In this document: positions 21,418 to 36,127 of the stretch, piece by piece
Numbering within the stretch: position 1 is the first letter of the stretch
Layout: each line of letters opens with the position of its first letter
Source of the DNA: Phallusia mammillata
Taxonomy: Eukaryota
Assembly (NCBI GenBank): GCA_965637545.1
Contig: OZ281498.1
Location: 20,708,001-20,772,000 of the forward strand
DNA: 64,000 nucleotides
Direction: 5' to 3'
Notes under the pieces: model-generated
Seen by the model: the letters and a program-made list of their open reading frames with translations, nothing else
Databases searched by the model: none
Told to the model about the DNA's origin: nothing
Made by a program: the position numbers and the translations under genes

Positions 21418-21627
21418 CTAAAAATCGGAAAACTGTTCATGCATTTCGTGCATAATGTCAAGATGTAGAAGCAACTTGTTAAACATTTTGTAATCTTAAA
21501 AACTTAAACTAATTTTTGAAAGAAATTTTGATATTTTTATTTTTAAAAACAGTCGTGCTTTTAATGTAAGTCTAGACTAAAATCCTAAAAAGCCGAGCAT
21601 CAACGTTTTTTTGAAAAAAATACGGTG

Positions 21628-22695
21628 TCATTGTTTCGCACCTTTGTGATTGTTCCAAGTTTCTTCATTCCTGTAACCTTGACGTGCATTATTCAAGGGC
21701 ATGCCTGTCAAAAAGTTCACCACTGTTTGCGAGTCCCCACCAGAGCCTTCATCCGACAAATGTTTGTTGATGTGATTTCTATGGTGCCGCTCTTCAATTG
21801 TTGGTTTTTCTGCGAACTGCAGCCGAATGTCCGGCGTTTTTGCGTTTCTCCATTTCGGCTTTGAAACGACACGAGCTTCTGGAAACCTTTTGTTGAACGC
21901 CACGTCATGCTGACGTAAATGTGAAGGCGGACACGTCATATTTCGCGCTTTTTTTGCTTGGAACCGTTCTCGGCGTGCTAAAATTGCTGAATCATCAAGA
22001 GATTTTCTTTCTTGTTTAAGGCGGTGCCTCCTTGATCCAGATTGGTTTTGGTGTCTAAAGCGTGAATCAGTATTTTCGAAGCGACCAAGCGGCCTAGAGT
22101 AAACGTCTTTATTGACCTTTGGCCTAATTCCAGGTTCGTGATGCATTGGTTCCAATTTCTGAACATTTTTACGTCGAGATCTGACTCCGATTTCTTGGAC
22201 AGCTTCTGGTTCCACATGGCTTGGAATTTGATCTATGAAGTCGTAAGTGCTGAAACCATGTCTGCGTCGCCCAACTGTGATCATAGTGTCTATTGGGTAT
22301 TTTTGATCGAAATCAGGTTCTTGTGGTGGAAAATCAATCCTTTGCATTTCGTTTTCACTATTACCGTCATCCACTTGTGATGTTAGAAATTCAGCCAACC
22401 GAGGACCAGCGTTTTCCCGCGTTTGGTCACGCCTTGGTATCTCGTCATAATCAGAAGACGATTCCGGGAGATTTCCTCGTTCGACGAAGATTTTGGTTTT
22501 CGGTTTTTCAAACTTTGATGAAGGAGTTGGGCAACTTTTTTCCAAAGCTCGGGTTTTTACTGTCTTGTGATTAGTGCTAGGCACTGCGTAAATGTGATTG
22601 AAAGTTGTTTCTGCTTCGTTAAGGGAAGTTCGATCAGGAGATGTTTTGACCTCCATTATTTGTGTGTTACCTCCTCCAACTGTTGATTGATTTAC
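21628..22695 (-). CDS. Giant gene terminal (or penultimate) exon
   Basis: cttctttttcAG acceptor, phase 0, in frame with the 342-aa ORF, stop TGA at 21630-21628; a possible internal donor at 21641. Confidence 0.75.
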   Translation of the reverse strand, partial: VNQSTVGGGNTQIMEVKTSPDRTSLNEAETTFNHIYAVPSTNHKTVKTRALEKSCPTPSSKFEKPKTKIFVERGNLPESSSDYDEIPRRDQTRENAGPRLAEFLTSQVDDGNSENEMQRIDFPPQEPDFDQKYPIDTMITVGRRRHGFSTYDFIDQIPSHVEPEAVQEIGVRSRRKNVQKLEPMHHEPGIRPKVNKDVYSRPLGRFENTDSRFRHQNQSGSRRHRLKQERKSLDDSAILARRERFQAKKARNMTCPPSHLRQHDVAFNKRFPEARVVSKPKWRNAKTPDIRLQFAEKPTIEERHHRNHINKHLSDEGSGGDSQTVVNFLTGMPLNNARQGYRNEETWNNHKGAKQ

Positions 22696-25600
22696 CTGAA
22701 AAAGAAGTCGATTCCATTTATTTTCAGTTTTAAATACTTACACTAACGTTTTTTGTTTTCAAACTGCAATAACTGTGTGGTAAGTTTAATGTACTTGGGT
22801 GTTATCTCGTTGTTTGATTAAGCTGGTTTAAAACTGAGTGACTGATAATGCTCGGAGAATTTGATCCAACTTTTTTATTATTCATCCAACCAACATTTTG
22901 TTAAAATTTTTAAACTTTGGTTGAATCTTACCAGCAACATGTTTAACCAAGTCATGTTTTTTTAGTTGGCTCTAACTGTCTTAAAAGATTACCTACTTTT
23001 GTCACTTATAAAGTCCAAGTAAAAGTTGCAAGTAGGCCCGGGATTATGTTCAAATAAAACAGGCTTGATTTGGACCTCACTTCAGACTTGGCTTTATTTG
23101 TGCCGCAGTTTCATCTACTTTCGAACCTAGTTTTGGTTCAAAAATGTTTGGGCTCGGTCGGGTTTTGGGCTTTTTCTTTCGAATTCGGGCCGGTTCTGGT
23201 CCTAGCTATTGGCCCGCTTGCAACTGTAGGTAAAGGAAATACATGCTTTTGTTGAATGTTGTTATCACAAAAGCCACTAAACTTGGTGTTGCAGATTTAA
23301 AAACCTAGTAAATTAAACCGGAAAACCCCCCAAACACAAAACATCAAACCATTGCTTACCTCACAAGTAATGTCTTCAAAATAGTCTCTCAGCACTGGAA
23401 CAGTCAGTTGGATCGACTCGTTTTCTTGTCTCGTTCTTTCATGCGCCGATTCGAGTTTAACAGTTCTCGGAGACACAATAATCTCTCCTCTATCTCTTAC
23501 TATATGTTGTGTTCCCGCGTTGACTTGTGGGCGGCTATTTTGTAGGTGTTTGTCGGTAGGTGCTGAGAAAAAAATACGCAATACTACTTAAGCAGTGTGT
23601 GGGATTTTTGGCATGATTTTGTGGTACAATAGTATGTGATGTAATAATTGGCATTATGGACGTAACAATGTTTGTTTTATGAATTGTATTTGTTTGATAT
23701 GTGCAGTTATAGGGCGGCAACCAAACTGATGAAATGATTAATGGAATGGTTTTAACAACGGCTGGTTGTAAACGAATTTCTGATCAATCTTTTCTGTTAG
23801 TTAAAAGTAATTTTATAGGTATTTCTACAGATGGGAAATTTCGGGTCTTATCAAGTCGAGGAGTATTATAAAAGTGGATGAAGTAGGAAATTTGATTTTC
23901 ATAAATTTGAAGGTTTTAGATTGACCAGCTAAATAAAAGGAGATGAATAAGTACTTGGTCGGATGCGTGCCACTACAGCCAGTTGAAAGCGAATCGATTT
24001 TTTTCTCAAAGAACTAATCTTCAAAGCACAATACTATTTATAGAGCTACAAAAACGTTAACCTTACGTGGCCGTGGTGAAAACAATGGTAATCTGTAATC
24101 TTCACCCATTGCAAGTTCTTCGTTAGTTTCAGTGATTTGTTTTGGACGTGGGCTTTTCTCGGTTCTGGGACTGCAGCAAGGTACATCATATATATGCGTC
24201 AGGTTTGTGTCTTCTTTCCCATTAACACAGGACTCAACGGCTGTTGAAGATGGTTCACTGCCGATCTTGTTTGAACTCTCAGTTCTACCCTCAGCCGAGG
24301 CATCCAAACTTCGCTTTGATCGGTTAAAACTCGAGCGAGGCTGTGGGATCGGGCGTTTTCGGAAGGTTTTAAATCCATTTGGACCACAACTGGGCCTGGG
24401 CGCTGACCCTCGTTTTCCTTTTTTGCTAATTTTGTGCTTTGTACTGTGATGTTTAGTAACAACCTCAGGTTCCTCCACAAATTCTTGAGAACTATCTTCA
24501 GTTTCTGTTAAGGTTAATTCGCTATCGTCCATAGATGACTCAAATCTGACCTTGAATTGGTGCTTCCGTTGTTGAGGGTAGGGATGATACCTTTTCCATC
24601 TTTTATATGGATTTACACTTTTGCAGAGTTTACTTCCACAACATGCATTGCGGAAATTGCGCGATCGGCAACAGTGGTGATTACGGCTGTGACAGGACGA
24701 GCCAGTATCTGTATCAGTGTCCACATGTCTTCTCCACCTTCTTGACTCGTTTTCTGCTGCAAGTTCGTTAAATCGTTTGGAAACCGTCGGGACCCTAGGA
24801 TAGTTTTCGGATGAATATAAACCTCTCAAAAACACTGGGTATTCAGATACAGTATTACGTTCTTGAGTTTTCTTGTCTTCGATGCTGTCTTGAGTTTTTA
24901 AGCTAAACACTTCGGTTCTTAGCAGATTTACTGCTTCTAACAACTTCAACTGAATCTCAGTGTTACCTGTATCAGCTACGCTTTCTCTGGCCTCACCTGG
25001 CGGTTTAAAATCAGACACCATTTTCTCAAACTGTGCTAGACTTGTTTGAATCTCAGCAAGACTGCTACTGATTTCAGCGCAGAACCGCTCACTTGAGTCC
25101 TGCTGTTTTGGCATGGGCAATATATTAGAAGTGTCAAATCCTGCGTCTTCTGCCCAGCTTACAACACGCCGTAACTCGGTATTAAGCTCGTCTACTAAGT
25201 CTTTAACTCCATCAGGAGTCTCCTGCTCTTCATTTGCGTCATCTTCGCCGCCAGATTTGCTGGATAATTCATTTTCAGTGTCTATGTCTGAATAACCACA
25301 AGTAGCTTTGGGGTCCTCAACTGTCTCACTCTTGGTGATGCTTGAGTCAGAAAGCTTCCAAATAACTTTCATCGTACCTTCACTATGCTTGCCACCACAT
25401 GTATTTTGATTTACTTTATCCTTAATAGTTAAAGAGCGAAACACCTCCTTATCTTTTACTGGTGACATTGCGCGTCTGTCATAGGAGGATGTATGCGAAA
25501 CACCGAAACTTTGTTTCTCTGTGCTTTCGTGGTCTTGTACGTACAAATAAGCTGATGTTGTAGCATCTACATCAGCTGATGGCCGTGTCTTAAACTCTCC

Positions 25601-28600
25601 GCGGCAAGACAGCTTGGCTCCAATCCGTTTTCCGACAGAATCAGCGACTGAGTTACGATCAATAGAACTATTTTCCACCTTTCTCTCCCTCATTCCTATT
25701 GTAATGTTCTTATCGTTACAGCTAGATTTGGTCATGGACTCTTGCTGTCGTTGCTCCCAATCTTTTCCCACAATGCAATAGCGCCGCAAGGACATCTGTG
25801 ATTGGCTGTCACAGCTCGCGTCTATGCTCGTGTCTACCAGCTCTATTTCGGGTAGCTGTGTCTTGTTTTCGTGTGGTCTAGACGCTTGCTTTGAACCACT
25901 TGGCCCTACTGATGGCACTAGAGCCACGTCGTTATCCTTATAAGTATCTGCGCTTTGGTTCTCTTCACTGGAAACTGGACAATTTGAAGCAAAGCTTTCT
26001 GTATGTTGACTGTCAGTAGTTATGCATTGATTTGAAGTTGCATCAGATACAGAAGGTACAGAAGTTTCCATGTCACTTTCGTAGTTAATCGACAAAAGAT
26101 CTAAAGCAGTTCCCTGGCTTTCGCAATTTCTGCTAGAGCTACATGGTACAACACGCAAGACAACATAATCGCTTTCATCGCTGGTAGACCCTATGCCTGC
26201 TGAAGGATTAGGTCCTGTGGGTTCAGGAGTCTCAAAAAACGCTCTTCCTGGCTGTTCGTCCGTGATTTCAACGCTCCCCTGATTAGATGGACGGTTTCTT
26301 GCTATGTTGCCAAACTTTTCTACCAATGATTCTGGTACAGACCCGAAAACCATGCTACTTTGGCTTTCAGGTAAACGATGAGTTTCTTCGGTTGGTTTGC
26401 TATTAATAACTCCTGCCGATGGATGAGGCGAACTTGGTGAATATCTTTTGCTCTTTCGAGGAGAATGAACTGTTGAAGAACTGGGTGGATAACCTTTGCT
26501 TGGTCCAGGCTCGTCGCATGAACTGAAATAAAAAACAAAACATTGTAATTCGGGAAAAACCTGCTGGCCTATAGATGAGTTATATAAGGATGAATAATGA
26601 GATGATTTTTGTTAGTTTTACAAAGTTTAAAATAGTTTATCTGTGACTTTATTTTGTTGAAATAAGTGTCCCACGATAATATAGCAGACCATACAAGATC
26701 GGACTAGGTTTGACTTTACTTAGGCCTACCATACGTCCTCTTTTTGGAGGACATGTTCTCATTTTTAACAAAAACCAAGTTGTCCTCCAAAGACAAGAGA
26801 AAAAATGCCCAAATGTCCTCCTTTTAAAAGAACTTCTGATTTATCAAATACATATGTGACAATTGTAAAGACTACAGGTTTTACGTTTTTTGAAAGTACA
26901 AGCTTATTTTAATGTTGTGATGTGATAAACGTTAAACTTTATCCAAACTATTGTATACCGTCTAATTTCTATAGCTTTTATTTTTAGGGGGCCTTAGAGT
27001 ATTTTTATATGTTATTTTCAAAATTTTGTCCTCCTTTTTGGGGATGGAAATATGGCCTACTTTACTTGCTTCATTATGTTTACCTGTCCGTTTCACTCGA
27101 AGCAGAAGGAGATGTCCTTTTTTCCAACTTCATCACATAATAATCCGAGCTCCTATCTGATGAGGACAAGGAACTTGTACTGGACTTCCAATGCTCCAGG
27201 TAATCATCATCAAATGTCACGCTCTTCCGTCTTCTGGTCTTTACTCCCTGCTTTAGAAGTTTGTGAAAAAAGCGCTTAATGGTCTTTGGTAACTTCCGCT
27301 TGGGAAACATCATACTAGAAGATGAAAACTCCTTTGATTCCGACTGTCTTCTGCGCCTTGCTCCAAACATCTTTCTTATTTTTGAGACGTTGCTTTTTTG
27401 ATTGATGTTGGTGTCAGGAGCACGCCTGGATGTAGATGGAGTTTGAGCAAGCTCTTCCTCCAAGGTTTCTCCCATACTACTGCTTTCTTCTCCACTTGAA
27501 GAGACAGCGTCTCTTACTTCATCTTCCTGGGCCTCCGATGAGGAAGAACTGCTTTTGCTTTTTAATGAAGACCTTTTATAAGAGACAGTGGAAGATATTG
27601 ACAAACTTTTCCGACTGCCTGATGTTTGTGTGCCAGAAGATACAACCGTTGTTACTAATTCATGTTGTTTCAAACCTGATTTGACAAATCTATGAACAGA
27701 TGCCTTGGTTGGAATCAGCCGTTTTCGGTTCAAACCAGTCGCCAAGTCTTTGCCGACCAACTCATCCGAGATTGAAACTTGACAAACCATCTTATACACA
27801 ATGAAAGCGACGTCTTCGTCAAACTCGGCTTCAAATCCCCGTGAAACTGGTAACATTTTTTGTAAGCTTTGAGCCTCATTATTCAACATCTCAATTAAAT
27901 GGTTTAGGCTCTTGATTTTTGCTCCCGAAGCAATACGTGCTGATTCAGCAGCGTCCTGTAATTTCCCTGCGCCTTTTGTTTTTACCTTTTTAAGGGCAGC
28001 CAGCTTTGTTGGAAGACTTGTGTACTTCACAGTGGGAAAGTCGTCTTCGTCAAACGAATCTAAATAGTCGTCTATTCCTTCAGCAGTTGAAATACTCGAG
28101 GGTGGAGCTGGAATTTTGCAACTCTCAATTTTTTTGTATTTTCCAGCGCTTTTGTCAGGGCATGAGGCTTGTTGAGCGTTTGATTCAGGAGCTGTCGGTT
28201 CCTCAGGGGCTGGTGGAGGTTTTACAGATTTTTTTGTGCTATTTGCAATGTAATTTTCTATAATGCGTAACCTCCTGGCGTCTTTAATACACTGATCGGA
28301 ATACGTTCTGGCGCCAAACTCCACCGCCGTAACGCCAATCTCGGTGGTTAAAAATCCCTCATAAAGTTCTTCCGTCTTTACATCCAGAAGCGAAGTATCT
28401 ATAGCCTCCTCAGTCATGTAACGACTGATCCCTAACACAAGGGCTTTAAGGGAAAACTGTTCACAATAATTGCCGACCTCTTCCTCGTTGTGTTTTGTAA
28501 AGTGGCGTACATACAGATTTTTGCCTTCGTAACAAGCGAAGTCTACTACTCGGGAAGCCAACGGCTTCAAGGTCCGATCGGCGTAATGGTCTGGAAAGAA

Positions 28601-31600
28601 GGGAGTAAAGCGCTTTGTTCTGATGGGACATTCTTGGCATAAGGGTTTAGCTCCCGGTGGTCCAATTACGGGATCATATACATTTAAATTGCGTGTTTTC
28701 ATTAAATCTTTGACGTCTTTCAAGGTCACCTCATTAGTGCCTTCAGGATCATAAACCACGTCCATACCCTTACAGTGTCTATGGCCATCCTTAGTGCATT
28801 TGATGTCAAGACAGTCAACGTCAGTGCATGCTTTTCGTTTAGTACTAGCCTGTGTGTATTTTAGACTCATCGGTATTTCATTCTTACCAATGGCGTGTTT
28901 TCCTTTCGCCAAAGCCGGCTGATTTCCGACAACTTCCCGGTCTCGGCATTGGAAAGACCGCAGAACTATACCATCACCACGCAAGTACATTATAGTCGCC
29001 TTCTCTTCCAGTTCCTTTTTCCGTTGGAGGCGGTCCTGATCATCTTTGTTGCCTAGCAACTGCTGGTCAGTTTCGTCGCTACTTTGAGAGCTTTTTTCTG
29101 AGCTCAATTCGGTTACAGTGGAGCGGTCAAACCACGTGGTCAGCTGCGAAACGTTTGTGGACGAAAAATCCATTGCTCCCAGCTTCAGCAATCCCTTTGG
29201 AAACTTTGTGTGTTTAGTTCGCACTTTGTCACCAAAGACATCAAGTTCGGAAGAAACGATTGACGGCAAAGATTGGCTACTATTCCGGCTAACTTTGGAT
29301 TTATCTGTCGTGGGGTTCTGACCGTGGATGTTGGACAACAGTTTGACTGATTTTAATTTTGAAGGTAGTTCACTCGAAGTAGAAGGGATAATATGTTGCT
29401 GTGCATCAAAAAACTTCATAAGTTTTGAGGCATCTTCGGTCGAAGTTTTGCTGGTTAAGGACGTTATGTTTTCTGTGGGTTGTGACCTGCTTAAACTTAT
29501 CGACCCGGGAAACCCAGGTACTTCCCGGTTTTTACGTAAGTTGGTGGGGACGTTCCCACTTCTGGGAGTTGCCTTTTCCGATTTTCCTTCTTTTTGGATC
29601 CGGTCGTTCTCAGTGGCGATGTCTGATTTTATGTTTAAGTTTGGTGGAACATCATAAATTGCTTCGGATTGATCTTCAGTAATTGCTGTTAAGCTGCTAC
29701 TATAGTTTGAAGATCTATTTGTAACATTTGAACCGGCATTAGTGCCTGACATCGTTGCTGAAGTCTCGCTGGCACTTGAAGGGTCCGTACCAGACCATAA
29801 CGAGACTTGGTTACTGGTCCCCGTGTTTCCAGACTTAACCACTGTCGTTCCAGTTGCTGTATCACTGTCGGTTACTGATTCACCTTCGCTTGCAACTTCA
29901 TCATAACCGTATGAGTTTTCTGAAGATCTTCTAGTAGAAGCTGAAAGTGAAGACGCTGGTTGGGGTCCGGTTCGAATCCAGGGAACTGCAGAAGTATTTT
30001 GACTTCTGCGAAATCTTCTGCCAATAACAACTTGAGATCTACTGCCTGAAGGTTTTAAACCAACGTTTCTTTGGATCTTCTTGTGACTTCTTATAGTGTG
30101 TCTGCTTTGTGTTCCGTTTTGGGATTCCAGAGATAGGCTTTTACGCATACCTAATCTTCTCTCTGTGCTAATTTCCCGGTCGTATATAGGCAAAGATCTT
30201 GATTGTCCTTTAGTGAGCCAGTATTCTGAGTTTCTTCCAATAGCAGCCTGCGAAAGTCGATTCAACACCCTATGTAGGTTTGAACTGGATTCGCTGTGTC
30301 TCTCTGGTGCGCTCCTATTCGCTGAACTTTTTTTACCCTCCATGCAGTCGGCGGCCAATGGGAGTGAGAATGTGACGTTTCTCGGAGTTCGGTCTCCACT
30401 GGCGACGTCAGCTGCAAGGCGGTTCTCCCTTCCGCGTCTACCAATATGCACTAAACTTTTGGGACCTTTCTTTACTCGTTTTGGTATAAAGCCTGCACTG
30501 GGAGGTGGAGCGCCTGAAATATGCTCCGATAATGCCGAGGTGACGTCACCGGAATCGTAATCGGAGCGCGTGACGTCACCGGACCCGTACGCAGAATGTG
30601 TGAGGTCATTACTGTCGTATGTAGAGGGAGTGATATCACTGGGGACGTCACTGGGAAAGGTTAGTGATCCTGTAAGGTTATCCGGTTTTGATGCATTGTC
30701 TGTGACGTCATCAGACATCGGTGCTGAGTGTATGACATCACCAATGTTGAGTAGAGAGTAGATATGTTCATTCGGAGTGTGAGTACTACGTTTTGGTGAA
30801 AGAGGCGTGTTTTTACGCATATTTGTATCTTCATTTTGTGACAAAGAAGTGATGGACAATGGTTCAGTCCATCTTAACCCAAAATCATAGGCTTGCTTCG
30901 TTGACGAGTTCGTGACTTTCGGGTTTTGGGATTTAGTATCCAATTTATCAGTTTTCCCTGGCATAAAACCGTATTTTTCTTTTAGCATTGACTTTTTCTT
31001 ATCTGAAGTCTGATGCAGCCTAAACGCCTCGGAGTTGTCGGAAAGGCTTGGTAGCAAATCGTAGATTGGTTTAGGTGATGGTTCTTTTTCTTTTAAACGT
31101 TTAAACTTCTCATTCGCCCCTGAATTGTTTGACTTGATTGGTATTGGATCATAAAATCTAACTTGAGCTGGACTACCATTCTTGAAGATTTCCATATCAT
31201 CAGAGCTAGGAACTTCATCGTAAATGTGATCGCTAACTTCAGGGGCAACTGACTTTTTTGCTCGTTCAGTTGCGCCGATTTTCACCCACCCTTGTACCAC
31301 GTCTGAGAGCTTGCGATAGAATGAACTGTTGGTGCTTCTTACTGTCTTAACTGACCTGCAGTTGTGTAAATAACTGCTGTACCAGCTACCAGTCGACGAT
31401 AGACCCAAACTACTAGCGCGGGAAGGCCGACGAAGTAGTCGCATACCGTCTTTCATGTTTCCCATCTCCTGATTCGTTGCTTTACGGTTAAGCAGTTGGT
31501 TAAAAGTAAAATCATCCTTAGGGGCGATTTGGGGTTTCTTGACGGGAAACTCCACTTCTCCTCGTCGCCATTTTTTAAGATTCTCATTGATGTCATGCAG

Positions 31601-34600
31601 CATGTCGATTCGAAGTAATTTAAGCTTCTCGGCAAGCTTTCTGTCCTCGCTGAAAGGGTTTTCTCGCTCGCTTGGAATCCTCATGAGAAAGTTGCCACGA
31701 GCGCCACCCTGTGGAGTTCTAACTTTCCGTTTTCGACCAATCACAACTTGATCCTGGTTCGTTTTAAAACGAGAAAATTCAAACGATTTTTCATCGGATG
31801 ACAAAATCGACCCTTGAACTTCCATAGCGGAGTCCACTTCCAACGGCGCCATGTTATGCATTGAAAATAACTCCTGTTCTGAGAGCTTACGCTTCTTTGC
31901 TAAATTCTGCCTGAAATTAGTTGCCAAGCGTTTTATTTTGCCGCCAACTTTTAAGCTCATTCTTCTTATTCGATGCTGCGCAAATTGTTCAGGTTGGCTT
32001 GTTTTTACAATGTTTTGACCCTCGCCATATGCACCAGGTTTTGGCAATTGTTCCAGTGGTGGTTTATCAACCATAAAAGGTGGAAGAGATAAAGCAGAGT
32101 CTCCTGAACCGAAGAGTTGGGTGTCGTTGGTGTCTCGTTTGTCGGGTTTGCTTCGCTGGTGTAGTTTTCCAAGTATAACGGCTTTCCTGAAAACAATACA
32201 AGATGAATTTTTATGTTTAGATGTACATTTGATCAGCAAACAGTCTGACGTTAAGTGAAAGAACAACGTTGTAACCTGGACTTGCGAAAATTATTACCTA
32301 GGGGTAAGGACGCAAAAGCATTCCGTAGAATCTGGGGTATCATTTAAAATCACTAAGAACTTGCACCTAAAGCCTTGATTTAAACAAGTATTTTTAAATA
32401 GAGTAATTTTAATGTAAATCGAAAATATATTCTAGTTGCAACTTGCACAATTTTCGTCAAAAATCATTTTGTTCCATAATTCAGTGTTTTGTAGATACCC
32501 TTTTAAATAAACTAATAAAATATTTGGTTATAACAAAATATACAGGCAAACCCCCCCCCACATACTTGTACGTGCCGTCATCGTTATGTAGTTTTCCAAC
32601 CAACACAATGTGGTCTTCAACTGGTACTCCGCGGCCCACTGACGTCATAAATTGATGACCTCCCAAGGTGTCTGGCGCGTCGAGTGGGCGGACCGCTTCC
32701 TCATAATTCTGTTTGATATCAATCGGTTTCCGTTTCTGTGTTTCCAAAAATAATTTAGTGTGATAATTATTTCACCAAATGCAACTGCTTCAACTCATAA
32801 TACTTTTAGTAAATTCCCATCCCCGCCACCAAAACTACTTTCGTAAGATATGCCTAATATTTTTACTTTAAACTATTCTATTCTGTGGAAAATTCAGTAA
32901 GTGAAAAATGTAAGTCCAATATTACCATTACTTATTTTTCGCAGCTTAAATTTTATAACATTTTTACGTTAATTTTGATGTTTAACAAAGGACGTTTTTC
33001 ATTTACCGGTTGAAATTCGACTCTTCCGGCGTTCTTATGTTCACTTGACGACCCAAGGAGTTTCACGTTGCCCCGAAACTTTCCTGCAGCCTTTCTTGCA
33101 CGCCTTACCATGTTTGAAGGTCCTACCACAGCACTGTCCGATGGATGTTTTACTACTGGTACCTCAGTTTCTCCAGCACGAATATCAGGTTGACTTTCCG
33201 GCGAAATAACGTTACCTTCAAGCAAATGTTCGAACCTTTGTTGTTACCAGTATTAGATTTTTCCATTATAGTATGTTTAAGTCATAAACTTTTGTATATT
33301 TTTTAGTGTGTAGCCTATAATCTTGAGTTGAGTTGAGTTTATTTCTATGGCCGAGCAAATCAAAGTGCATTAACCCGACAGAGACAATCACCAAACCTAA
33401 CAACCATTAAAGAACTGCACAACGTTAACAAGCACCTGTAAGTACACCTTTATTTTAACAGTGAAAATACAACTACATTCTCCAAGATTTTAATAATAGA
33501 TTCTTTACTTGTAGGACCATAAACCGTAGGACAATTTCCGCGAGTTCTTCTATTTCAAGGGTCGGCAACCTTTTTTGCACTGCGGACCGTTTTTGAAAGT
33601 GAAATTTTATCGCGGACCAGTCTTCAAAAAACTACAAATATTTTCCAATGAAAACGCCAAAAATTGTTTATCATCCCTGGGATACATGGACAAAATGTTT
33701 TAAAGCATTTAACCTGAAAAAATATACGGCCCGGTAACCAACTCCTCGCGGACCGGTACCGGTCCGTGGACCGGCGGTTGCCGACCGCTGTTCTATTTAA
33801 CCAAATTTAAAACATTTTTTTAGAAACAAAATGCCGCTTCAAGTTGTTTGACGTATAGTTTTCAACGCATTAAAACAAAAATTGTGATACCTTCGTCTAA
33901 TCCAGAAAATTTGGTAATTTTTCTAGATTTCGGTTCCGAAACACCAGTATGACTTCTTCCTGTGTGTCGCAGTAACGGTGGCATAATCTTTTCCACATTT
34001 TCGCGGGTTTCCTTTGTCCTCTTTACTTCCATCAACATATCAGAAGCTCTTCTTCCAACGGCGTCTTTTCCCGCTTTAGAAATTCGTAGTTTGTTCAATG
34101 ATTCGTTTGATTTGATCCCAGGCGGTGAATTTGTTCTAGGATCACAGTAAAATGGTACACCTTTCATTTCAGCAAAGTAATACAAAAACATCAAGCCAAT
34201 AAATGATAACTAGCCTAAGCTGCAGACAGTGCACACAGTTCGATTTGTAAGTTTTCGTTCAGTGTAGCTGGTGACAAGACATGGGTCGTATTGGCCCGTA
34301 TAGCCATCTTCATTAAAGTAACTCTTTCAAAAGAGATGCCAAGTATTACCTTTTAACATAGTTTAACAAAATCAAGTGTTGTGTTTTCCTGTTTCTAACT
34401 TGACCATTGTTAGAAAAATGTAACCTATAATCCCGAAAAAAAAAAACATTTCCCAATTTAGACTATTTAATAAAGCAACATTCAATCTGTACTGGGACGA
34501 TGTGATGCAAAATCTGTGTGCAATCAATTTAGCCTAAATATGTGTTCGGCCGTTAAAACGCAAACACAAATTTTGCTTTTCTTATAGCAGTGGTTCTCAA

Positions 34601-35791
34601 AGTATGGGTCGCGACCCAAACATGGGTCGCATAGGGTAAAAAAATGGGTCGCGCACACAATAGCCTTCCCACTATACTGTTTCGCACATGGCGATTGTAA
34701 CGTCATAGCACGGAAAATAATAGGATAAGTTAATCTTGCTATAACTGAACTTGGCCATGTGACAGTTAGCGTTAGAGTATGAGTAAGTATTCGTACAAGG
34801 AAATAAATACATTTTTTGTTGTTCGAGGCTTGGGTCGTGAGGTGTTTATAAAACTCAGATTTGGGTCGCGTTCAAAAACGTTTAAGAACCACTGTCTTAT
34901 AGGCAAATAAAAAGTCAAGTTACAAAGTATCACATTTTAGTACCTGAATTTATTCTTTTTATATTCCTTATAATATTGTTCCAGTCCCGTTGTCGATGTC
35001 GCCATACAATTCGGAAAAGATTCGCTTGAGGTCTCAGAGTCGCTAAGATTACGTTTTGCTCCTTTCCATTCTGGTTCAAACATTGGTTTGGTTCCGTCAA
35101 ACAGTTGAATCGAAGACGCAGCCCAATTTGGTAAACAATTCTTGGAAAAGTCTTCTGGACGTTTTGACTTTTGACCAAACTTTGATTTTATGAGAAGATC
35201 AGTTTCGCTACGTGCCTTTACTCTGTTGGTATGTAACGCCAAAGACCCCTTTCTTTCACGTTGAGCCATTTTGCCAGGTAGCTTGTTTGTAATATCAGTC
35301 GAATCTGGTTTCTTCAAATCCGTATTCACTGTAGACGTGTATACCGTTTCACTTTTTGATTTTGTCCCGTTTGAATACGTGTACAACGTTTCACTACTTT
35401 TTGAAGCATTGTTGGAAGTCTTGCTGTTAGTTTCTGCGGTTTTACTAGAATATACATCCTTCAGGCTCTTTCCAGTAACTTTGGGGACTAACGAAGGTGT
35501 AGATTGTGAAAGAAACTTGTTAGGCGTTCCACTAAACCTCAATTTTCTTCTTCTTTTCAAACTTCTTGGTGTAAGTTTCTCCTTTGCGGAGTATTTTCCG
35601 TAACTCGAAGAAGATGAAGAACTTAGAACATTCTGATATAAAGACGATCGCTTTTTGTAAACTTTTCGTTTGGTTCTGGTATTTTTATCACTCAAAATAG
35701 TCGGTAAGTCACGAATGGTTCCCGTTTTGTCCGACATTTTAAATTTTAGCCCTTCAATAAATTGCAAAAAAATGTCTACAATTTTCCCCAT
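21628..35791 (-). CDS. Giant low-complexity, largely disordered protein (~3,160 aa from 34160; ~3,440 aa if the 34944-35791 exon is joined)
   Basis: Phase-consistent GT-AG chain complement(join(21628-22695,23360-23562,24067-26522,27084-32186,32566-32735,33007-33215,33891-34160)) links all large minus-strand ORFs. Exon 34944-35791 (ATG 35791) ends in phase 2 while 34160 starts in phase 1, so an unplaced small exon or a separate gene is required. No family recognised. Confidence 0.7.
23021..23228. mobile_element. Degenerate, internally deleted relative of the 5360-5783 MITE
   Basis: agttgcaag...ggcccgcttgcaact termini and ttcgggcc motifs; no clean TSD. Confidence 0.6.
23360..23562 (-). CDS. 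Giant gene exon
   Basis: 203 nt, phase 1-0; ttttttctcAG acceptor, GAG/GTAAGC donor. Confidence 0.75.
24067..26522 (-). CDS. Giant gene 2,456-bp exon
   Basis: Acceptor ttttttatttcAG, reads in frame into the 771-aa ORF; donor GTAAGG; phase 2-1. Confidence 0.8.
26722..27058. mobile_element. hAT-type MITE with tgtcctc(c)tttt subterminal repeats
   Basis: Flanked by the direct repeat actttactt (26713-26721, 27059-27067); imperfect TIR aggcctaccata / tatggcct; about four gtcctc repeats; ends ~25 bp from the mega-exon donor. Confidence 0.7.
27084..32186 (-). CDS. Giant gene 5,103-bp mega-exon
   Basis: Within the 1728-aa ORF; acceptor ttgttttcAG at 32187-32188, donor CAG/GTAAAC at 27083; phase 2-2. 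Confidence 0.85.
32566..32735 (-). CDS. Giant gene exon
   Basis: 170 nt, phase 0-2, KRKPIDIKQNYEE...DDGTYK; donor GTATGT. Confidence 0.7.
33007..33215 (-). CDS. Giant gene exon
   Basis: 209 nt, phase 1-0, GNVISPESQPD...VEFQP; donor GTAAAT. Confidence 0.65.
33556..33790. mobile_element. hAT-type MITE (235 bp)
   Basis: TIR caagggtcggcaacc / ggttgccgaccgctg (13/15); perfect 8-bp TSD ttctattt; (g)cggacc(g) repeats. Confidence 0.9.
33891..34160 (-). CDS. Giant gene exon
   Basis: 270 nt, phase 1-1, GVPFYCDPRTNSPPG...SGLDE; donor GTATCA. Confidence 0.65.
34588..34894. mobile_element. hAT-type MITE (307 bp)
   Basis: TIR cagtggttctcaaa / tttaagaaccactg; perfect 8-bp TSD tcttatag; repeated tgggtcgc motifs. 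Confidence 0.92.
34944..35791 (-). CDS. Giant gene putative first coding exon (Ser/Lys-rich)
   Basis: ORF 34937-35791; donor TTCAG/GTACTA at 34943. It could instead be a stand-alone 284-aa ORF. Confidence 0.65.
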
Positions 35792-36127
35792 TGTTACAAA
35801 ATAATTTTACATTGTTGGCAAACAAACGTCACGGTTTAGTGATTTTGTTGCGTGCGTGTTTTGTTGGTAAACTTTGCAAATATTTTCAACACAAAAATGA
35901 TCGTATCTGACTTATTTTGAGGTGCGCAATGAAATAAATACATAAAATCTGTAATGTATTCTTCAAGCTGTAAACCATTTGAGTTTCCAACCCGAACTTT
36001 TAGTATCAAATCTACTTTAATATTTTTTATTTGCTGTAGTCTGGAAACGCATTTAGGAAAGAAGTACATTTTTCGCAGCCCCATTTGGTTTCTGTTTGTT
36101 AACTAGCAAACTGACAGTTGTTTGAAT
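35792..36127. promoter_or_regulatory. Putative bidirectional promoter/5' UTR interval (giant gene and COG5 head-to-head)
   Basis: 336 bp between divergent ATGs at 35791 (minus) and 36128 (plus). Positional inference only. Confidence 0.55.

Follow-up and report, generated by a model that had tools for sequence, protein, structure and literature searches.

A conserved giant gene of Phallusia mammillata with a founder tyrosine motif and species-specific motif expansion, predicted to encode a docking scaffold

The sequence Y-[D/E]-E-[V/I] represents the classical preference of the SH2 domains of Src-family proteins and Nck. The Nck-binding site around Tyr474 of the Tir protein of enteropathogenic Escherichia coli (EPEC) reads EHIYDEVAA (PMC2999339), and HIYDEVAADP was used as the EPEC Tir phosphotyrosine site sequence in a study of nephrin/Nck clustering (PMC4238058), nephrin itself carrying YDEV twice (PMC3237483). 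Here, we describe a gene on the minus strand of a 64,000-nucleotide (nt) stretch of Phallusia mammillata DNA, called the window in the following, which defines all positions given. Its predicted product of about 3,400 amino acids (aa) carries the same HIYDEV string at a site that is maintained in its relatives. Judged from the sequence, the locus appears to be a real and conserved gene for a giant scaffold, in which a founder tyrosine motif has good support and motifs of its class have expanded in this species.

Gene structure and family

The gene runs from about 35791 down to 21628, and the window is eukaryotic DNA with a guanine-plus-cytosine (G+C) content of 34-45%. The minus strand between 21628 and 35806 comprises eight stop-free blocks, which include every open reading frame (ORF) listed in a first-pass annotation of this DNA:

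34940-35806, minus strand: block A
33865-34209, minus strand: block B
32956-33243, minus strand: block C
32484-32771, minus strand: block D
27083-32290, minus strand: block E, 1736 codons
24041-26611, minus strand: block F, 857 codons
23300-23587, minus strand: block G
21631-22737, minus strand: block H

The 1728-, 771-, 342-, 110-, 94-, 90- and 88-aa ORFs of that annotation are all found on this strand, and a 284-aa ORF starting with ATG (34937-35791, minus strand) adds to them. A simple scan for frame-keeping splice signals led to the following exon model:

34944-35791, minus strand: exon A; first ATG at 35791 with an in-frame stop just upstream, donor CAG/GTACTA; 282 aa, rich in Ser and Lys
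33891-34135, minus strand: exon B from the splice model; 81 aa, with GRRASD (34039-34056), a conserved site of basophilic-kinase type
33007-33215, minus strand: candidate exon C with uncertain borders (acceptor 33215 or 33170, donor 33007 or 33109)
32566-32735, minus strand: exon D; 56 aa, with the C-terminal end HIVLVGKLHNDDGTYK
27084-32186, minus strand: giant exon E; 5103 nt, 1700 codons
24067-26522, minus strand: exon F; 818 codons, strong splice sites, with the motifs HIYDVP and NITIGMRERK
23360-23562, minus strand: exon G; 67 codons, strong donor
21628-22695, minus strand: exon H; 355 codons and TGA, with HIYAVP, YDEIP and MITVGRRRHG

The idea that the separate ORFs join through phase-compatible GT-AG junctions into one frame stands for A>B, D>E, E>F, F>G and G>H, where the signals are good, but is less secure for B>C and C>D, where the acceptors are weak. 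Candidate exon C is included because phase compatibility from B to D requires it. Without exon C the model amounts to 3359 codons plus split codons and with it to about 3,420, in agreement with the proposed length of about 3,400 aa. The acceptor of exon H is the best of its region, and the TGA stop (21628-21630) is followed by AATAAA/ATTAAA polyadenylation signals at 21565 and 21541, that is 60-90 nt downstream, as fits a terminal exon. N-myristoylation of the N-terminus, which begins with MGK, was considered and ruled out, as Asp occupies position 6 and the N-terminus is not conserved in L001, one of the related loci described below.

An exhaustive, single-sequence phmmer search with residues 340-1539 of exon E against 1.84 billion representative sequences detected just eight related clusters (P0001-P0008), with expectation values (E) from 4e-64 to 4e-12. 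The best match is a Ciona intestinalis protein of 3075 aa, XP_026693921.1 or "uncharacterized protein LOC100180955" (P0001; E=4e-64, 35% identity over the searched part). An identity this low to the best match, from Ciona, would agree with an ascidian of a different family. The seven further clusters (P0002-P0008; E from 5.9e-39 to 4.2e-12) are single-ORF gene calls on eukaryotic contigs of metagenome and Logan collections and represent giant exons like exon E. Similarity in the core together with collinear exons, found by phmmer, tblastn and two alignments termed A1 and A2, places the Phallusia gene in the LOC100180955 family. As far as the exhaustive single-sequence search reaches, this family appears to be restricted to one lineage of tunicate type, as the first-pass annotation had supposed, with the Ciona protein as its sole named member. 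A word-index search with exon E (length filter 955-3038 aa) gave no match, one with the core of P0002 returned P0001-P0003 only, and for the exon A ORF the contig collection contained no exact entry. A literature search on LOC100180955 found nothing. In all of these analyses the exons were searched singly rather than as a joined protein, and their translations were pooled just for motif counts and shuffles.

In up to four other eukaryotic loci (L001-L004), exons A, B, D, E, F and G have collinear counterparts that follow the same order on one strand. The end of exon A, including the 9-residue string CMATSTTGL (34982-35008), is conserved in L001, and exon B has collinear matches in L001 (E=1e-8), L003 and L002, the ends of which coincide with the predicted exon borders. 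For exon D, the identity to L001 is 59% across 29 aa; L003 and L004 match it as well, and the matches stop at the predicted donor. The N-terminal part of exon F is similar to the second giant ORF of L001-L004 as well as to residues 1463-1830 of P0001, and exon G is 60% identical to P0001 residues 2453-2495, with further matches in L002 and L004. The Ciona protein matches, in order, exon E (30223-27731), exon F (25858-25526) and exon G (23488-23345). Because this protein spans the equivalents of E, F and G, and because the counterparts of A, B, D, E, F and G are collinear, the data argue for one gene of about 3,400 codons, in which at least exons A to G very probably belong together.

Two points speak against joining all eight exons. 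The sole counterpart of exon C is a weak collinear match in L003 (E=2.3), and for exon H no homologue was detected among the loci of the relatives. Exon C and the link to exon H are thus suggested by splice signals, to which the Ciona protein adds in the case of exon H, since it runs 575 residues beyond its G-like part. These points and the weak splice sites of exon C are also what would be expected if the region consisted of two or more separate genes or of pseudogenic remnants and encoded no 3,400-aa protein. Such an arrangement is very improbable in view of reading frames that stay open over 1736 and 857 codons at a G+C content of 37-45%, the order A-B-D-E-F-G kept in other loci, the single 3075-aa Ciona model that covers the equivalents of E, F and G, and the strong splice signals at E>F, F>G and G>H. 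Synteny speaks neither for nor against orthology, because a tblastx comparison of both window flanks with L001-L006 gave no match; for the upstream flank of the gene, no counterpart was seen in the 10 kb upstream of exon A in L006.

Some further observations concern the structure of the locus. A string of hydrophobic residues followed by GKLH stands on both sides of the D/E junction, with HIVLVGKLH (32586-32612) near the close of exon D and AVILGKLH (32160-32185) at the start of exon E, and both are conserved in relatives. In L001, which is the locus of P0002, the second giant exon (23351-26090, running past the locus end) is a single ORF of 2989 codons compared with 818 in exon F, which means that family members differ several-fold in the length of their disordered arms. 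G+C-rich palindromic elements occur in the introns A-B and B-C (33732-33783 and about 34600-34900), namely a palindrome of the CGGTCCGCG/CGGACCGGT type and repeated GCGACCCA / GGGTCGCGACCC strings, and look like remnants of small inverted-repeat transposons.

Tyrosine motifs and the case for docking

All ten tyrosine motifs named in the first-pass annotation translate as written at the places given there. They are listed below together with the array to which several of them belong:

31205-31228, minus strand: HIYDEVPS in exon E, aligned as DHIYDEVPS
31139-31156, minus strand: FYDPIP in exon E
31049-31066, minus strand: IYDLLP in exon E
29891-29905, minus strand: YDEVA in exon E
29642-29659, minus strand: IYDVPP in exon E
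28742-28756, minus strand: VYDPE in exon E
28667-28681, minus strand: VYDPV in exon E
24179-24196, minus strand: HIYDVP in exon F
22579-22596, minus strand: HIYAVP in exon H
22435-22449, minus strand: YDEIP in exon H
29642-31156, minus strand: motif array between the N-terminal island and the core, comprising FYDPIP, IYDLLP, HIYSLL, IYDREI, YDEVA and IYDVPP

The first of these motifs is the one with a clear evolutionary record. In the N-terminal alignment (A2), which covers about 370 residues of exon E in the window and six relatives at 17-25% identity, invariance is limited to five columns, among them those of the Tyr and the Glu of HIYDEVPS (seven of seven sequences). The six relatives read as follows at this site:

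P0002: SNIYDEIPA
P0003: SHIYDEVAS
P0004: NHYYHEVSS
P0005: HHYYHEVDS
P0006: GHVYDEIST
P0007: EHVYEEVDS

From these sequences a family consensus of x-H-[IVY]-Y-[DEH]-E-[VI]-x-S is obtained. Just upstream lies the conserved island FYRKLSDVVQGWVKIG (31274-31321, minus strand), and an island of the form FYxKLSxxVxxWV always precedes the first tyrosine motif at a short, variable distance. The proposal that the tyrosine motifs are conserved islands in otherwise fast-evolving sequence is therefore borne out for the first motif, but not for the other nine, which show no positional conservation in relatives 25-35% identical.

To judge the motif counts, the pooled exon translations were shuffled 1000-2000 times with their composition preserved. 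The observed values were attained in none of these shuffles for YD (15 versus 4.9 expected), [ILVF]YD (8 versus 1.0), YDE[VI] (3 versus 0.03) or Y[DE]x[VIP] (8 versus 1.3). The Nck-type pattern YDx[VP], which had been chosen beforehand, occurs five times where 0.5 are expected (reached in 0 of 1000 shuffles), and the strict form YDxP twice where 0.28 are expected (p=0.03), so that the counts of this class exceed those of composition-shuffled sequence, as had been predicted. Asp follows 15 of the 76 tyrosines, against a background of 5.9% (p=3e-5). An origin of the motifs as copies of repeated DNA was ruled out, the sole internal repeat being a 30-nt tandem at 30540-30599. This tandem encodes YDSGDVT/YGSGDVT beside YDSNDLT, a small recent expansion of a different Tyr-Asp/Gly unit within the motif array.

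Relatives differ in how far they have multiplied the motif. P0002 has an array of four YDE[IV][PA] motifs (NIYDEIP, RVYDEVP, HDYDEVA and NIYDEIP) in addition to YEMP and YEDI, and four to six motifs of this class are present in each of P0006, P0007 and P0008. All of these arrays lie in one and the same region, between the N-terminal island and the core, where the motif class has multiplied independently in the relatives. Such a pattern would be expected if short motifs formed a multivalent array with turnover around a founder site that itself stays fixed.

The invariant consensus Y-[D/E]-E-[V/I] of the founder site corresponds to the SH2 preference of Src-family proteins and Nck, and an aliphatic residue (Ile/Val) at position -1, upstream acidic residues and a frequent Pro at +3 or +4 fit the substrate preferences of Src- and Abl-type kinases. 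On this basis the most likely reading, which we hold tentatively, is that of a multivalent docking scaffold with phosphotyrosine-dependent SH2 docking. The gene would encode a non-membrane protein of about 3,400 residues in eight coding exons, two of them giant, and long disordered arms would flank a helical core (about 370 residues) and display short linear motifs. The ancestral, invariant H-Phi-Y-[D/E]-E-[V/I] site and the extra copies gained in this species would be phosphorylated by Src- or Abl-type tyrosine kinases, and the phosphorylated sites would in turn recruit SH2 proteins of the Nck, Src-family or Crk type. Phosphorylation, SH2 partners and an output to actin are what we infer here. 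With respect to the partners, the first-pass annotation had named Nck and Crk. The Crk part of this proposal has turned out weak, as Pro is found at +3 in three of the listed motifs only (YDVP twice, YAVP) and YxxP shows no excess, but most motifs are of the form YDxxP or YDE[VI] and are a better fit to the preferences of Nck or Src-family SH2 domains.

Several observations weigh against the docking scaffold. The generic Crk-type pattern YxxP is not enriched (5 observed versus 3.7 expected, p=0.29), and in P0004 and P0005 the first motif reads HYYHEV and no further motif accompanies the ancestral site. The protein also contains many basic clusters (RKRKV, KRRRK), which could mean that it is nuclear.

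Moreover, the extra motifs could have arisen neutrally, as by-products of rapid evolution in a protein that is disordered and rich in Asp, and only the first site would then matter. This is what the missing positional conservation of nine of the ten motifs would suggest, as would P0003, P0004 and P0005, which show no motif excess. Composition-keeping shuffles never reach the observed counts, however, and this motif class expanded independently in P0002, P0007 and P0008, each time in the corresponding protein region. We regard a neutral origin of the extra motifs as unlikely.

The tyrosines might also act without being phosphorylated, either in ATG8/LC3-interacting motifs of the type [WFY]xx[LIV] or in adaptor-binding YxxPhi signals, or the conserved Tyr might be part of a small structural element. 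A point in favour of such a role, and a further one against the docking scaffold, is that the pattern [Y]xx[LIV] with acidic residues inside describes YDEV, YDEI, YDLL, YDPI and YDPV alike; in addition, the invariant positions are Y, E and the aliphatic residue at +3. LC3-interacting motifs usually have acidic or Ser/Thr residues before the aromatic position. In this protein, in contrast, His and Ile/Val precede the Tyr, and YxxPhi signals act in the tails of membrane proteins, whereas no membrane span occurs here. Abl/Crk-type sites typically have a Pro at +3 or +4, as recurs here, and six to seven residues of the motif coincide with those of proven Nck ligands. Taken together, a purely non-phosphorylated role is unlikely, and SH2 docking is retained as the preferred reading.

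Conserved core, helices and further docking motifs

By a charge-hydropathy proxy, 68-100% of the windows per exon are unfolded, in line with the largely disordered giant protein suggested earlier, and the folded-like windows cluster on the core. No membrane-span-like segment was seen in any exon. Pfam scans of all window ORF blocks, the eight relatives, the core alignment and the most conserved helix alone returned nothing above noise; a KH_12 match in exon F (E=0.11) was dismissed as noise. The earlier statement that no recognised domain is present therefore holds as regards Pfam, but it had missed a conserved helical core and a set of conserved short motifs:

28235-29335, minus strand: conserved core of about 370 aa, defined by tblastn and alignment A1 (nine rows)
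28535-28570, minus strand: most conserved helix LKPLASRVVDFA, amphipathic, with the AKAP-like spacing Phi-x-x-L-A-x-x-Phi-Phi-x-x-A
27758-27808, minus strand: second conserved amphipathic helix AFIVYKMVCQVSISDEL, with counterparts in P0001-P0005
30368-30385, minus strand: PRNVTF, an RVxF-type (PP1-docking-like) motif, with LVHIGRRGRE upstream
27185-27226, minus strand: KSVTFDDDYLEHWK, conserved tail island of giant exon E, which also fits the strict RVxF pattern
31721-31750, minus strand: QVVIGRKRKV, first copy of the basic motif Phi-Phi-I/V-G-[R/M]-x-R
30425-30454, minus strand: LVHIGRRGRE, second copy
30005-30034, minus strand: QVVIGRRFRR, third copy
25679-25708, minus strand: NITIGMRERK, fourth copy, in exon F
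22255-22284, minus strand: MITVGRRRHG, fifth copy, in exon H

The core consists, in order, of the blocks LLKLGxxD[YF]SSTNxSxxxxW[WF], [LM]YLRGDG, PSL (PSLEDIHC in P0004-P0007), FxPFFPxLYEKxxLxPLAxRIVxxAxxEG, GI[AS]xY and ARRxxIIxxYI. AlphaFold2 with the nine-row alignment A1 predicted two long helices over the final 120 residues, at segment residues 270-303 and 306-390, with a predicted local distance difference test score (pLDDT) of 70-85 and little else with confidence, and the model of the core from the single sequence was poor (pLDDT 36). A Foldseek comparison of the core model with the PDB gave no match below E=2, and with the profiles A1 and A3 as queries, sequence searches of the PDB were empty up to E=10. 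In the most conserved helix Pro and Ala are invariant, the family form being L-x-P-L-A-x-x-[ILV]-[IV]-x-x-[AVS], and the second amphipathic helix has the family form [IV]YKMVC..SIS[DE]EL.

The short motifs are conserved to different degrees. The strict RVxF pattern, [HKR][ACHKMNQRSTV]V[CHKNQRST][FW], has two matches in exon E, RNVTF, which is also present in Ciona, and KSVTF in the conserved tail, where the relatives keep the pattern only partly; the tails of P0002 and P0004-P0006 read [VA][TAN]F[DK][DE]xH[LV]xxW[KE]. PRNVTF and HIGRRGRE form a pair that is common to the Ciona N-terminus (GIGRR...PRKKVTF), this second copy of the basic motif lying about 20 residues ahead of the RVxF site as in Ciona. 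Across the family, the first copy is kept in the form PLxIGRxR, its Gly being invariant. In view of the conserved helical core and these other conserved short motifs, a description as a pure phosphotyrosine scaffold is too narrow.

The helices bring another class of scaffold into play, the A-kinase anchoring proteins (AKAPs), whose amphipathic anchoring helices of 14-20 residues have a hydrophobic spacing suited to the RII docking groove and follow a 12-residue pattern. The window protein could accordingly be an AKAP-like multi-enzyme anchor, in which the helices bind the dimerisation/docking domain of regulatory subunits of protein kinase A (PKA) or a related protein, the RVxF sites dock protein phosphatase 1 (PP1), the RRxS sites are substrates, and the tyrosine motifs are secondary or function without phosphorylation. 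The best-conserved element of the family is indeed the helix LxPLAxx[ILV][IV]xx[AVS], and eight of the nine members comply with the 12-residue pattern. Comparison with Ht31 (AASRIVDAVI) and AKAP-IS (LAKQIVDNAI) (PMC4526808) shows a resemblance in the window (ASRVVDFA) and in P0008 (LAKRIVDFSL). A second conserved amphipathic helix, the PRNVTF site common to Ciona (PRKKVTF), the conserved KSVTF tail and the conserved GRRASD site point in the same direction. On the other hand, neither an AKAP nor an RII-binding family was matched in Pfam, even at E up to 10 on the helix alone, and no PDB sequence match was obtained. The pattern is permissive, with about one chance match expected per protein, and here it has a proline inside. 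AlphaFold2 puts the helix into a long helix pair, which may bury its hydrophobic face. As this anchor would also leave the excess of tyrosine motifs unexplained, we assign it a low probability.

A combination of these functions can be envisaged as well. The protein might be a tunicate-restricted giant signalling hub that joins three docking systems on one chain, with helices anchoring PKA or another docking-domain protein, RVxF sites holding PP1, and an expandable HIYDEV-type array recruiting Nck- or Src-type SH2 proteins multivalently. This is quite unlikely to hold in full. If it were true, the protein would be an animal carrier of the HIYDEV string of EPEC Tir and a candidate driver of actin condensates.

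Comparison with known scaffolds

At present, the locus stands as a solid annotation of a conserved, uncharacterised gene family rather than as a surprise; it encodes a familiar kind of protein, the function of which we infer. It should be of interest for tunicate cell biology and for the evolution of motif number. If the docking reading holds, tunicates own a large multivalent phosphotyrosine scaffold without detectable kinship to Cas, Gab, IRS or nephrin. Its array, growing and shrinking from species to species around a single fixed ancestral site, would then offer a naturally occurring system in which to follow the evolution of docking-site number.

The only true homologue with a name, Ciona LOC100180955, shares with the window protein the core, both amphipathic helices and the IGRR...PR(K)KVTF pair. 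The first ~650 residues of exon E, with the invariant HIYDEV island, are missing from its model, which may reflect a true difference or an incomplete annotation, and it has few YD motifs and YE[VSM][LVP]P-type sites instead. No function is recorded for it.

Giant scaffolds of mainly disordered sequence, with most of their coding region in one or two very long exons, are also found among the AKAPs (AKAP11/AKAP220, SPHKAP and AKAP12). In the window protein, a conserved amphipathic helix resembles Ht31 and AKAP-IS, and RVxF motifs of PP1 type occur; this is a likeness of pattern only, no Pfam family or PDB AKAP peptide being matched.

The substrate domain of p130Cas/BCAR1 is, like the window protein, a disordered array of tyrosine motifs, and IYDVPP and HIYDVP are strings which we take to be Cas-like. 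The N-terminal SH3 domain, serine-rich four-helix bundle and C-terminal Cas homology domain of p130Cas/BCAR1, in contrast, occur in no family member, and YxxP is not enriched in the window protein. With regard to kinship with Cas, Gab, IRS or Dok, the Pfam scans of the window exons and the eight relatives found no SH3, PH, PTB or Cas domain.

Nephrin and Tir are membrane proteins, whereas the window protein has no membrane span and no sequence kinship to either, the likeness arising from the motif string alone. This string is close: DHIYDEVPS of the window and SHIYDEVAS of P0003 match EHIYDEVAA of EPEC Tir over six to seven residues, with HIYDEV shared by all three. The presence of several copies on one disordered chain recalls, finally, the multivalent system of nephrin, Nck and N-WASP (PMC4238058).

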